A DNA stretch of 64,000 bases from Salpingoeca rosetta (taxonomy: Eukaryota; Protista; Choanoflagellata), in assembly GCA_033442325.1 (NCBI GenBank), contig JAWQFM010000013.1, positions 646,642 to 710,641 on the forward strand. Direction: 5' to 3'. The stretch's first letter is position 1; every line of letters begins with the position of its first letter. The notes beneath the pieces were generated by a model. It did no database searches. It had not been told where the DNA came from and saw only the letters and a program-made list of their open reading frames with translations. Both the position numbers and the translations under genes were made by a program. This document shows, in pieces, positions 39,263 to 43,229 of the stretch.

Positions 39263-42200
39263 CTAGAAGATGCCCTCTGCGCGCGCCTGGTCAATGATGC
39301 TCTTGTATGCGTCCGCATCCGGCCCGCTCGACAGCTGCTCAAAGAACTTGGCAAACACCTGCGGTGGTGGGTGGAGAAGGAGCAGATGGGGCATGAAGTG
39401 AGCGGGCACGTCGGTGCTGTGGATGTGCACGAGCAAACGCAGAGATGCAGGCACACACAAAGACACAGAGGGGGACAGCGACAAATCACACAAGCAAAGC
39501 GCAGAAATGCAGGCAGGCGCGCACACCACACTACACTACACACACACACACACACACACACACACACACACACACACACACACACACACACACACACACA
39601 CACACACACACACTGCATACACGTGTCCCACCTGGCTGAACTCCTTCCTGCGGGCTGCAATCTCCTCTGGTGTGGCGACGGCGGCAACAGCAAAGCCGAT
39701 GGTGGCCGCGTGCATGTCAAACGAGACGCCAAGCCGCACCAGCAGCCCCGTCACGAACAGCCCAATCTGCCGCAACGACGCAACGTGCAGTGGCCTAACA
39801 AGTACATTTTGAGGGGAAGGGGGGAGGGAGTGAGTGCAGATGTATACGTGTGTGTGTACGTGTGTGTGTGCGTGTATGTGTGCGTACGTATGTGTGAACT
39901 TACGAATGAGTGTGCAAGAGTGTGAGTACACATGCAGGTGAGGAAGTGTGTTGGCACGCAAGCACGCGTGTGCGCTCACTTGGTCGCGGCCGCCTGGGCG
40001 GTGGTGTATGCGGCGACGGTGGCGATGATGGCCAGCAGGTGGTCGAGAACAGCGGCCTGAGGTGTGCGAGCGAGCGCATGTATGGGAGGGAGGTTAGGAT
40101 GGATGTGTGATCCCGAGGGTTATATGAGATGGATCAAGATTGTGCGTGTGCACGTAGCGCGTGTGAGCGTGTGAGCATGTGTAAATGTCGGTGCACATGA
40201 AGCACAGCACGATGCTTCGTGTCAACACACAGGCACCAAAACGGAAGCGAGAAAAAGTGGCAGATATGAAGAGAGCAGGTGCCAGGCGCACCGTGTTGAT
40301 GTTGTTGCACAGGGACTTGTGAATCTCCTGCCGAAGTTGGAAGAAGCTGTCACGATGAAGCGAAACAGAGGAAGGATAGGGTGATCACATTGAGCTGGTG
40401 TGATAAAACATTGGTTTTTTTTTTGGGGGGGGGGGAGACATGCCGCTGCTCATCCCGTTCACACACACACACACACACACACACACACACACACACACAC
40501 ACACACACACACACACACACACACACACACACACACACACACACACACACACACACACACACACACACACACACACACAAGCAAAACCGAGCACGCGACG
40601 GCTGACTTGAGCATGAGGTCCTGGTCGTGCTGGGTGAGGACTTCAAAGCGATCCTGTGTGTAGACAGACGTCTGCTCGCTCATCGCTGCAAGAAACGCCT
40701 GCATGCGATGATGATGTGTGGTTTGGGAGTAGAAAGACGAATGTGGTTGTGTGTGTGAAGAGAGGGAAGGGTGAGGACACGGGTTGACGAGGAAGCATGG
40801 ACCTATACAACGACACAAACAGACAGACGCACATGTGTGAAAGGACACACACACACACACACACACACACACACACATGCATACACACACTCACATGCAT
40901 ACACGCGCGCGCGCACACCCACAATCCCCCGCCACAATCCTCCCCCCCCCCACACGCAACAGCGCCACACCGTGATCTGCTGCTCAATGTGAGTAATGTC
41001 CTTGAGCGCTTCGGCGTTGAGCGCAACGTCATCAAAGACAGACTGGCGGAGAACAGCAAGACGCAGGCGGGGCGATGTTGCTGCCTCAGCCACCGTCGTC
41101 GCATCGTCGTTGCCCACGCCAACCGCGTCTGCATCCATGGTGGTGGCTTTTGCCTGCAGGCAAACCGGGGTGGAGATGACAGGCGCGGCGGTAACGGCGG
41201 ACGCGGACTTGAGTGCGGCGTTGAGCGCTTCCACAGATGAGACATTTGCCGTCCCCTCGCCACCTGAATGGTGGTGGGTTGTTTGGTGTTGGCAGTGGTG
41301 TGTCGCGTGAGAGTAAGGACTTGTTGTTCAACACCTGAGCACACGCACTGTCGTCGGAACACACAGGCACAGACACACAGACACACAGACACACACACCC
41401 ATATGAGCAGGGAAGGCACGAACCAAAGACAATGTCCAGTGGCGCATCGAGGGCGCCCGCCGTGAGAGCCATCGCAATGCCCGTGGCGGTCGGGCGACCC
41501 TGTGCACATGGGGCACCAGGTGCAGGAACATGAGGTGGTGGTTGGCGTTTGTGTGTCAGGCACATTCGGATGAAGGCGTGGCTGTTAGCAGACGCCTCAC
41601 ATGGGGAAGACATACACAGACAGACACACACAGGCACACAGACACATACAGACACGCACGCACGAAAACAGACACACACAAGTACCCAGACACAGACACA
41701 GACACAGACACACACACACACACGCACACAGACACAGACACACAGACACACAGACACAGACACACACACAAACAGACAGACAGCGTGATTCATTTCGGCC
41801 ACCTTGCCCCAGGAGGCGTCAAAGGTTTGTGCGTCACCACTGCCCTTGACCCACAGCGCTGGGTTGGTGTCGGAACCAAGCATGATTTCACCGTCTGCCT
41901 CATATCTGTGATGATGGCAGCGAATGCCACGACGCAGAGGCGCAGAGGTGCGTGAGGCAGTGCGCCAGACAACGTTCCCGTCAATGGTTACACCCAAGAC
42001 ACACACATACACACACACACAGACTTGCACACACACACACACACACACACACGCACGCATTCACACATTCACGCATTCACACATTCACACACACACGCAT
42101 TCACATTCACACATTCACACACACACACACACACACTCTTACGCGTGTGCATTCTTGAGGAGGGTGTCCATGGTGGTCTTGGCTTCCTCGATGTAGTCGG

Positions 42201-43229
42201 ATGCGCGCAGCATGAGTGACGGTGGCAAGATGTTGGCGGCCTTGAGCGCCTTCACCAGTTCCTCCTCAAAGGCCCGGGCGGTCTCCTGTCAAACAGCAAG
42301 CAGATGGTGGTTGGTTGGTGGTGTGTGGCGGTGTCAGGCGTTGGCCGTGGCGTCAGGCCGCAGGTACCATGTCACGCGTGATCATGCAACAGGCAACGGA
42401 ACGGAAGAGCGAGACAGGCACAACATATGCACAAACACAAAGACAGACACAGACATAGACACACAACATGCGCACAAACACACTACATGCACACAGGCAC
42501 AGACAGGCAGGCATAGACACAAACACACAGACACACATAGACACAGATGCACACACTCACACACATAGACACACACCGCATCCACGCCGAGGTCGTCGAC
42601 GCAAAGGGCAAAGAGAACGTTGAACCCAAAGCTGCTCTGAAGGACCCTTCGCGTGGTGTCCGCAGAGATCAGGGTGCTGCACAGCCACCAATGCGCATTC
42701 AAGTGTGCCATCATGTACCGTGCGTCACAAACCGTGAGATACGCAGCACGCATGGCCCCATCTACTGCAAACAAACAAAGCCTTGCGTGTTCACTGCATG
42801 CACCACCATTGTATCGCTTCAAGCGCTTACCGCAGCAACCGCACGCTGGGCGCTGCCTTTGTCGCTGTAATGGGCTGCACAAGGAACGTGATTGTCGACC
42901 AAGACCTCTCCAGCGTCACCTGCAAGGCCCAAGTATCACCACACGCACGATGGTGTGGGTGGCAAGATAATGAGAGATGAGGGATAAGGGATGAGACACG
43001 GCATGCCAACACACGCCAACCCACCTGGCCGAGCCAACCCACGAATCAGACATGTGTCACCCCCGCTTCAACCCCCCCCCCCCCCTGCGCTTCCCAACCC
43101 CCACACCTCCTCATCTGTGTAGACGTCTGTGAGCTTGAGCGACGCATCGGAGCCAGGCGGCGGGCTCCACCGCCACGCTTCCTCCACCTGCTGCTGCTTG
43201 GCAGCACTGCCTTCTGCACCATCACTCAT
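39263..43229 (-). CDS. Cysteinyl-tRNA synthetase-like protein with degenerate active site
   Basis: Collinear CysRS-like blocks: [65 protein letters not shown]...SWGK-GRP, LDIVFG, RLRLAVL and DALR-like [35 protein letters not shown] and KMSKS are not present. Confidence 0.75.

Follow-up and report, generated by a model that had tools for sequence, protein, structure and literature searches.

A 64,000-nucleotide stretch of the genome of the choanoflagellate Salpingoeca rosetta (contig JAWQFM010000013.1, positions 646,642 to 710,641; hereafter the window, whose own numbering is used below) carries PTSG_05557, a gene related to cysteinyl-tRNA synthetase (CysRS). We conclude that PTSG_05557 is probably an intact, protein-coding, non-catalytic paralogue of the cytosolic CysRS, kept by selection as a pseudo-synthetase binding module. 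The gene occupies window positions 43229–39263 on the minus strand, comprises 12 exons and 11 introns, and encodes a protein of 469 amino acids (aa) annotated as ‘hypothetical protein’ at NCBI. The protein is recorded as XP_004993425.1, EGD73862.1 and UniProt F2UBJ6, bears the automatic UniRef label ‘tRNA synthetases class I catalytic domain-containing protein’ and is called P0001 in our analysis.

PTSG_05557 belongs to the CysRS family, with a likeness far beyond chance. Pfam family PF01406 matched the whole of P0001 with 44.1 bits (E = 2.2e-11), above its curated cut-off of 27, and a scan of all six frames of the 55.4-Mb genome with the same family matched the locus weakly, in the region of exon 4 (window 42139–42681). 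BLASTP between P0001 and the species' own canonical cytosolic CysRS (P0002, 708 aa) gave an E value of 4e-17, with 20% identity over 380 residues and a second, N-terminal segment. The solved structures nearest to P0001 by sequence are the CysRS of P. falciparum, Coxiella and E. coli. AlphaFold2, run on P0001 aligned with P0002 and 34 bacterial CysRS sequences, returned a model with a predicted local distance difference test (pLDDT) value of 75 and a predicted template modelling score (pTM) of 0.75, in which residues 70–200 and 280–410 reach approximately 85–97. A Foldseek search of the PDB with this model placed P. falciparum CysRS first (E = 7.7e-21), and the top matches, all CysRS, had template modelling (TM) scores of 0.66–0.72; the 14 best were all CysRS chains and the 19 best were CysRS or MshC, with TM scores of 0.56–0.76. 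An independent single-sequence model from ESM Atlas (pTM 0.70) matched cytoplasmic CysRS clusters with a TM score of 0.75 over residues 25–439. Structure prediction had been proposed as a check in an earlier interpretation made from the letters of the window alone (hereafter the sequence-only reading), and the predicted architecture is indeed that of CysRS.

The residues by which CysRS binds zinc, cysteine and ATP are well established, and in P0001 the motifs that contain them are replaced. We mapped these motifs from colinear BLASTP and MAFFT alignments, with E. coli numbering checked on an alignment to structure 1li5. The CGPT column reads VQPI (aa 55–58), so that the place of Cys28 is taken by V55, or by P57 in a gapless alignment of exon 2; under either alignment, exon 2 is without any cysteine. 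HIGH, which is HMGH in the parent type, has become SVRL (aa 66–69), and the next conserved arginine (R71) is kept. GRPGWHIEC is changed to GRPTATGIA (aa 187–195), with A191 and A195 in the places of W205 and C209, and DIHGGG is changed to DIVFGG (aa 208–213). The FPHHxNE block reads VEALNA, in which E223 replaces H234, A227 replaces E238 and the asparagine (N226) alone is kept. Finally, KMSKS falls on AVGVG (aa 258–262), within an Ala/Thr/Val-rich stretch with pLDDT values of 40–60. With the zinc/cysteine site, HIGH and KMSKS all replaced, PTSG_05557 is predicted to be unable to bind zinc, cysteine or ATP canonically, and so to be unable to activate cysteine or charge tRNA.

Most of these replacements had already been recognised in the sequence-only reading: VQPI, SVRL and DIVFG stand at the residues given above, and the altered GRPGWHIEC region that it reported is the GRPTATGIA of the annotated frame. 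Its assignment of ARGTAN to KMSKS was mistaken. The frame gives GEGTAN at this point (aa 213–218), straight after DIVFGG and away from the KMSKS position. Treating GEGTAN as a KMSKS-like motif brought forward by a deletion of ~45 aa behind DIVFGG was also rejected, as BLASTP and MAFFT both give a colinear, equal-length, unrecognisable segment. An alternative HIGH region in another frame (AMRAAYLT..., ~42768–42700) was discarded because splice phases and the database protein identify it as an intronic look-alike. The sequence-only reading had named hidden exons with canonical motifs as one case that would overturn it. Across all six frames of positions 38500–44000, we found nothing resembling HIGH, KMSKS, CGPT, WHIEC, HHxNE or DDKI, and on this ground missed exons carrying canonical motifs appear to be excluded at the locus.

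The gene model itself is precise. We retrieved P0001 by an exhaustive HMMER search with the longest clean exon (window 40971–41261, minus strand), which gave a single match with 100% identity over the exon. A script mapped its 469 residues and stop exactly to the minus strand of the window as 12 exons running from 43229 to 39263. All 11 introns are of the GT...AG type with CAG or TAG acceptors, and in a local comparison the whole locus was 100% identical to the NCBI record. The minus-strand stop-to-stop pieces between 39.2 and 43.3 kb contain CysRS-like blocks in changing frames, with (TG)n-rich stretches between them. The coordinates and exon structure proposed from the letters alone were therefore right: 39263–43229 are the limits of the annotated coding sequence, whose 12 exons are free of stops and joined by GT-AG introns. 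The exons are as follows.

Exon 1, 43107–43229, minus strand: aa 1–41 by exact mapping of P0001; start codon at 43229–43227 and WRWSPPPG motif at 43175–43152.
Exon 2, 42831–42919, minus strand: aa 42–70 plus 2 nt, 89 nt in length; VQPI (42880–42869) at the CGPT place and SVRL (42847–42836) at the HIGH place.
Exon 3, 42577–42676, minus strand: aa 71–104; starts within the conserved Arg codon of GHAR; RRVL and VDDL blocks kept, DDKII motif lost.
Exon 4, 42143–42285, minus strand: aa 105–151; best-conserved block of the catalytic domain and the sole single piece that matches PF01406 alone (E = 1.5e-4).
Exon 5, 41803–41905, minus strand: aa 152–186; ALW...WGK block; a CP-domain segment of ~41 aa is absent here.
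Exon 6, 41424–41499, minus strand: aa 187–211; GRPTATGIA (41499–41473) for GRPGWHIEC; DIVFG at 41436–41422.
Exon 7, 40971–41263, minus strand: aa 212–309; GEGTAN (41261–41244), E223/A227, AVGVG (41126–41112) for KMSKS; the Ala/Thr/Val-rich stretch covers residues 216–275 and is modelled poorly, then comes the start of the stem-contact (SC) fold.
Exon 8, 40607–40698, minus strand: aa 310–339; helical region.
Exon 9, 40292–40346, minus strand: aa 340–358; 12-aa DDxNT-type start of the helical-bundle domain at 40327–40292.
Exon 10, 39980–40056, minus strand: aa 359–383; one helix of the bundle.
Exon 11, 39632–39794, minus strand: aa 384–438; 19-aa patch (39781–39725) 58% identical to the canonical enzyme, then a 15-aa insertion and TPEEI.
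Exon 12, 39263–39358, minus strand: aa 439–469 and stop; stops short of both the last beta-hairpin of the anticodon-binding domain and the eukaryotic C-terminal extension.

Long (TG)n/(CA)n microsatellites occupy many introns of PTSG_05557, as they do in both canonical CysRS genes of the species; examples are a 120-nt tract at 40460–40579, a second at 39538–39613 and the (TG)n-rich intron 4. Within intron 4, directly upstream of exon 5 (41982–41906, minus strand), the frame of exon 5 is open and includes a 10-aa stretch like the NGSVYFD strand of CysRS. The counterpart of this strand within exon 5 itself is DGEIML, and the upstream stretch is without an AG acceptor. It may be left over from an earlier exon boundary, derive from a small duplication or be a product of chance. 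A relic exon at this place was considered and rejected, since splice phases and the database protein mark it as an intronic look-alike.

Two canonical CysRS genes are present in the S. rosetta genome, both on the contig we denote C8: one of the cytosolic type, encoding P0002 in 16 exons at ~863–868 kb, and one of the mitochondrial/bacterial type, which we read exon by exon. The separate canonical cytosolic gene that the sequence-only reading wanted confirmed is thus present, together with the mitochondrial-type gene. Its description of PTSG_05557 as a non-catalytic paralogue is also well supported, given that the four zinc-ligand positions, HIGH and KMSKS are replaced and that separate canonical genes exist.

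Three introns of PTSG_05557 (2, 5 and 9) have exact counterparts in the canonical cytosolic gene (2, 7 and 12, respectively), at the same position and in the same phase. The shared sites lie in the Arg codon of GHAR (phase 2), between WG[KQ] and GRP (phase 0, before exon 6) and after ...I[ND]T (phase 0, after exon 9). Intron 1 coincides as well, because exon 2 is 89 nt long in both genes, while exon 3 measures 100 nt in PTSG_05557 and 97 nt in the canonical gene, leaving intron 3 one codon off. By a rough estimate, the probability of at least four exact coincidences arising by chance is ~6e-6. On the basis of these common positions and phases, PTSG_05557 is a DNA-level duplicate of the intron-containing cytosolic CysRS gene and not a retrocopy. 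Where P0001 and P0002 share a residue, they use the same codon in 19 of 39 cases, compared with 18 expected from codon usage. Synonymous sites are hence saturated and the duplication old, with no recent gene conversion. A tree did not place P0001, as long branches meet there.

A chimaeric origin was also considered, since the mitochondrial-type gene gives the higher score for exons 4 and 5, and the cytosolic gene for exons 9 and 11. We rejected it, as the cytosolic gene has introns 1, 2, 3 and 5 of the N-terminal half in common with PTSG_05557, and the mitochondrial-type intron near DIHTGG differs in both codon and phase. The better score of exons 4 and 5 is attributed to divergence of the cytosolic enzyme itself. 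At one block, the canonical cytosolic CysRS (contig C8, ~864.4–864.6 kb) reads ALN|VEAPDVL, whereas other CysRS, the mitochondrial-type gene and PTSG_05557 read N(I/V)LPP; here it is the active cytosolic enzyme that diverges, not the dead copy.

Compared with P0002, P0001 is missing three segments: the ~100-aa eukaryote-specific insertion that follows DDK (for which the canonical gene uses three exons), ~41 aa of the CP domain, and the last anticodon-binding hairpin with the Lys-rich C-terminal extension (~135 aa). The protein ends in ...EGIF, with the helical bundle present and a weak alignment of the C-terminal anticodon-binding domain at that end. Its additions are the 15-aa insertion before TPEEI and a longer N-terminus. 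The sequence-only reading had called the gene near full-length, which is an overstatement at 469 aa against 708 aa and with three parental segments absent.

The N-terminus of PTSG_05557 is acidic and, by eye, free of presequence-like features. Its W-x-W-S-P-P-P-G motif (43175–43152), upstream of the LxL..YT strand, resembles the N-terminus of animal cytosolic CysRS. No motif of this type was found within 1.4 kb upstream of the annotated start of the canonical S. rosetta cytosolic CysRS. The dead copy may therefore keep an ancestral N-terminal feature that the active gene has lost, or the 5′ end of the active gene may be mis-annotated. Separately, residues 2–23 (window 43226–43161) resemble the C-terminal G..W.W.P end of the mitochondrial-type CysRS, with a z score of 5.6 against shuffled sequences; this likeness is unexplained and probably due to chance.

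We next weighed whether PTSG_05557 is a maintained gene or a decaying relic. The balance of evidence is on the side of a coding gene that is maintained, rather than a pseudogene in decay, because the frame is open, the splice sites are canonical, codon bias and a hydrophobic pattern are kept, and the fold models are confident. Stops occur in the introns of PTSG_05557 at 0.02 per codon, a rate that predicts ~9.4 in 469 codons, and none was observed. All 22 splice dinucleotides are canonical. The GC content at third codon positions (GC3) is 0.743, compared with 0.537 in the gene's own introns, and frame 0 fits the codon usage of the canonical gene far better than frames 1 and 2. Relative synonymous codon usage (RSCU) correlates with that of the canonical gene at r = 0.87 for the coding sequence and 0.23 for the introns. 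In P0001, hydrophobic residues occupy 66% of the conserved hydrophobic columns of the family, compared with 30 ± 4% after shuffling; the figure for conserved polar columns is 13%, and retention in the SC fold and helical bundle reaches 82–91%. The marks of an unprocessed pseudogene (stops, frameshifts, lost splice sites and neutral codon usage) are absent from PTSG_05557. As the protein is still recognisably similar to P0002, with local patches of 58% identity, at a time when synonymous sites are saturated, it appears to have been constrained for most of its history.

Several observations weigh against this conclusion. An exhaustive HMMER search of 1.84 billion representatives with exon 7 retrieved no orthologue, only P0001 itself, as did whole-protein word searches of 5.8 billion proteins including EukProt, and a metagenome scan for P0001 relatives returned nothing; these searches would miss relatives below ~35% identity or those crowded out by Ala-rich words. 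A profile built from exon fragments retrieved the canonical S. rosetta enzyme only. The terminal branch of P0001 measures ~10 substitutions per site, ~30 times the median of 0.34, its amino-acid composition is aberrant, and divergence on this scale also fits relaxed constraint. Residues 216–275 look degenerate, with a hydrophobic retention of 36%, close to the null, and pLDDT values of 40–60, and the aligner introduces some bias into the hydrophobic-pattern test. The AlphaFold2 model drew support from aligned canonical CysRS sequences, which is why the ESM Atlas model matters as independent evidence. We found no mention of PTSG_05557 or its accessions in the literature and supplements that we consulted. 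The indications in favour of expression are general or indirect. Transcriptome support is reported for 98% of S. rosetta gene models (PMC4054682), and fourteen sequencing runs from four studies, none of them recorded as RNA, hold 0.23–0.39 of the sampled words of the locus, close to the 0.29 expected for spliced mRNA alone; a search for transcript contigs gave none for P0001 and likewise none for the certainly expressed P0002, and is uninformative. The sequence-only reading had called the gene retained, a claim supported only indirectly, by the intact reading frame and canonical splice sites, by coding-like codon usage, and by the persistence of the hydrophobic pattern and of conserved patches; no orthologue was found in these searches.

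The missing orthologues, the long branch and aberrant composition, the degenerate segment, the lost parental segments and the silence of the literature, together with an alanine content of 16.4%, would all suit a functionless relic, that is, a duplicated CysRS gene that lost its function, may still be transcribed and is drifting to decay with its frame still open by luck. We consider this rather unlikely. With synonymous sites saturated, neutral drift over the same time should have broken the frame and eroded the splice dinucleotides, neither of which has happened; the GC3 and RSCU values indicate that codons are still used as in a coding gene; and the hydrophobic core has held its pattern alongside confident fold models, both single-sequence and alignment-based. 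PTSG_05557 may also have died very recently after a long functional life. An annotation artefact, in which the real transcript differs and missed exons carry the canonical motifs, could be imagined for a gene model from an automated pipeline, but it is scarcely credible given the six-frame result, the PF01406 scan of the genome, which gave just the weak exon-4 match at the locus, the colinearity of the exons with CysRS and the four introns that coincide with the canonical gene. If the gene is maintained, it might bind tRNA-Cys or another RNA through its SC fold and helical bundle and act as a chaperone, sequestering factor or sensor. Residues 276–410, which make up these two domains, are the best-kept part of the protein by pLDDT (~85–97) and hydrophobic retention, the patches most like the canonical enzyme fall within them, and aminoacyl-tRNA synthetase (aaRS)-like domains that bind uncharged tRNA exist, such as the HisRS-like domain of GCN2. 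We nevertheless hold this role to be doubtful, as P0001 has an isoelectric point (pI) of 4.70 and a net charge of −22 (the pI of P0002 is 6.1), the pI of the SC-fold region is 4.75, compared with 8.35 in the canonical enzyme, neither the final anticodon-binding hairpin nor the Lys-rich extension is present, and the conserved patches consist of helices of the hydrophobic core, not of basic residues at the surface. A new enzyme that reuses the CysRS scaffold for another ligation or chemistry, as MshC does, is very improbable. There is precedent in active CysRS paralogues (PMC9437257), and PTSG_05557 retains the CysRS fold, with MshC among its structural matches. Yet HIGH, KMSKS and all zinc ligands are replaced by non-equivalent residues and the second Rossmann half of P0001 is degenerate. 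MshC and CysRS*, by comparison, keep active class I ligase signatures.

Since the protein is acidic, its SC region has turned acidic, and the anticodon hairpin and basic tail are lost, PTSG_05557 is more likely to bind a protein than tRNA. The repurposing proposed in the sequence-only reading accordingly fares unevenly: the non-catalytic paralogue stands, whereas tRNA binding is its weakest part in view of the charge and the absent segments. PTSG_05557 arose by an old DNA-level duplication of the intron-containing cytosolic CysRS gene, followed by extremely fast evolution and by loss of three segments and of every class of catalytic residue (zinc/cysteine site, HIGH and KMSKS). The open frame, splice sites and codon bias were kept, and so was the pattern of the hydrophobic core in three regions: the first Rossmann half, the SC fold and the helical bundle. 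Selection has probably retained the product as a folded, cytosolic, acidic binding module, whose partner would more likely be a protein than tRNA, for example the canonical CysRS or another basic partner. SLIMP works as a heterodimer with active SerRS2, and an analogous pairing of PTSG_05557 with the canonical CysRS is put forward as a hypothesis only. More specifically, and only tentatively given how improbable we judge it, the dead acidic copy could be a regulatory subunit or decoy that takes as its partner the active cytosolic CysRS, or the basic tail of this enzyme, or that senses cysteine or tRNA-Cys status.

On the plus strand, a divergent gene at window ~43447–45778 encodes a 253-aa protein without a Pfam match. 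As it starts ~218 bp from the start codon of PTSG_05557, it is possible that the two genes use a bidirectional promoter.

SLIMP, HisZ and the GCN2 domain illustrate how evolution can turn translation enzymes into regulators by way of non-catalytic aaRS paralogues, and S. rosetta is a model for the origin of animals that is open to genetic work. The general significance of PTSG_05557 is modest, as the gene is confined to one species on present evidence; its main value is to show plainly how great the divergence of a copied synthetase can become (~10 substitutions per site) with its fold and gene structure kept. Among its closest known counterparts is P0002, with which it shares Pfam family and fold, colinearity over ~430 residues, four introns identical in position and phase and a fifth 3 nt off, and the lineage-specific patches LRQIG..., TPEEI and IHxxLCxxIxT. 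The two differ in their 20% identity, in the replacement of Cys28, HIGH, W205/C209, H234/E238 and KMSKS, and in having 12 and 16 exons, respectively.

HisZ, a regulatory subunit, and the HisRS-like domain of GCN2, a sensor of uncharged tRNA, resemble the role proposed for PTSG_05557 in being aaRS-derived, not aminoacylating and acting by binding. They belong to another aaRS class and family, occur in wide taxa and have known partners, whereas PTSG_05557 is so far a single-species orphan. MshC and CysRS* derive from CysRS, as does PTSG_05557, but both are bacterial and catalytically active, whereas PTSG_05557 is without any catalytic motif. A 2022 review lists just these two as described CysRS paralogues, both active (PMC9437257). 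This agrees with the statement in the sequence-only reading that no such protein had been described, although the gene itself was already in NCBI and UniProt under an automatic class I synthetase domain label. The kind of protein, an aaRS-derived non-catalytic paralogue, is thus already known, and, in agreement with that review, none derived from CysRS is known to have been described. SLIMP, the SerRS-like protein of animal mitochondria, is of class II and widespread in animals, whereas the parent of PTSG_05557 is a class I CysRS and no orthologue of the copy was found. SLIMP is described as a eukaryotic aaRS paralogue that arose by duplication, with an ablated active site and domain loss, and that is retained without catalytic activity (PMC10570016), features that PTSG_05557 appears to share.

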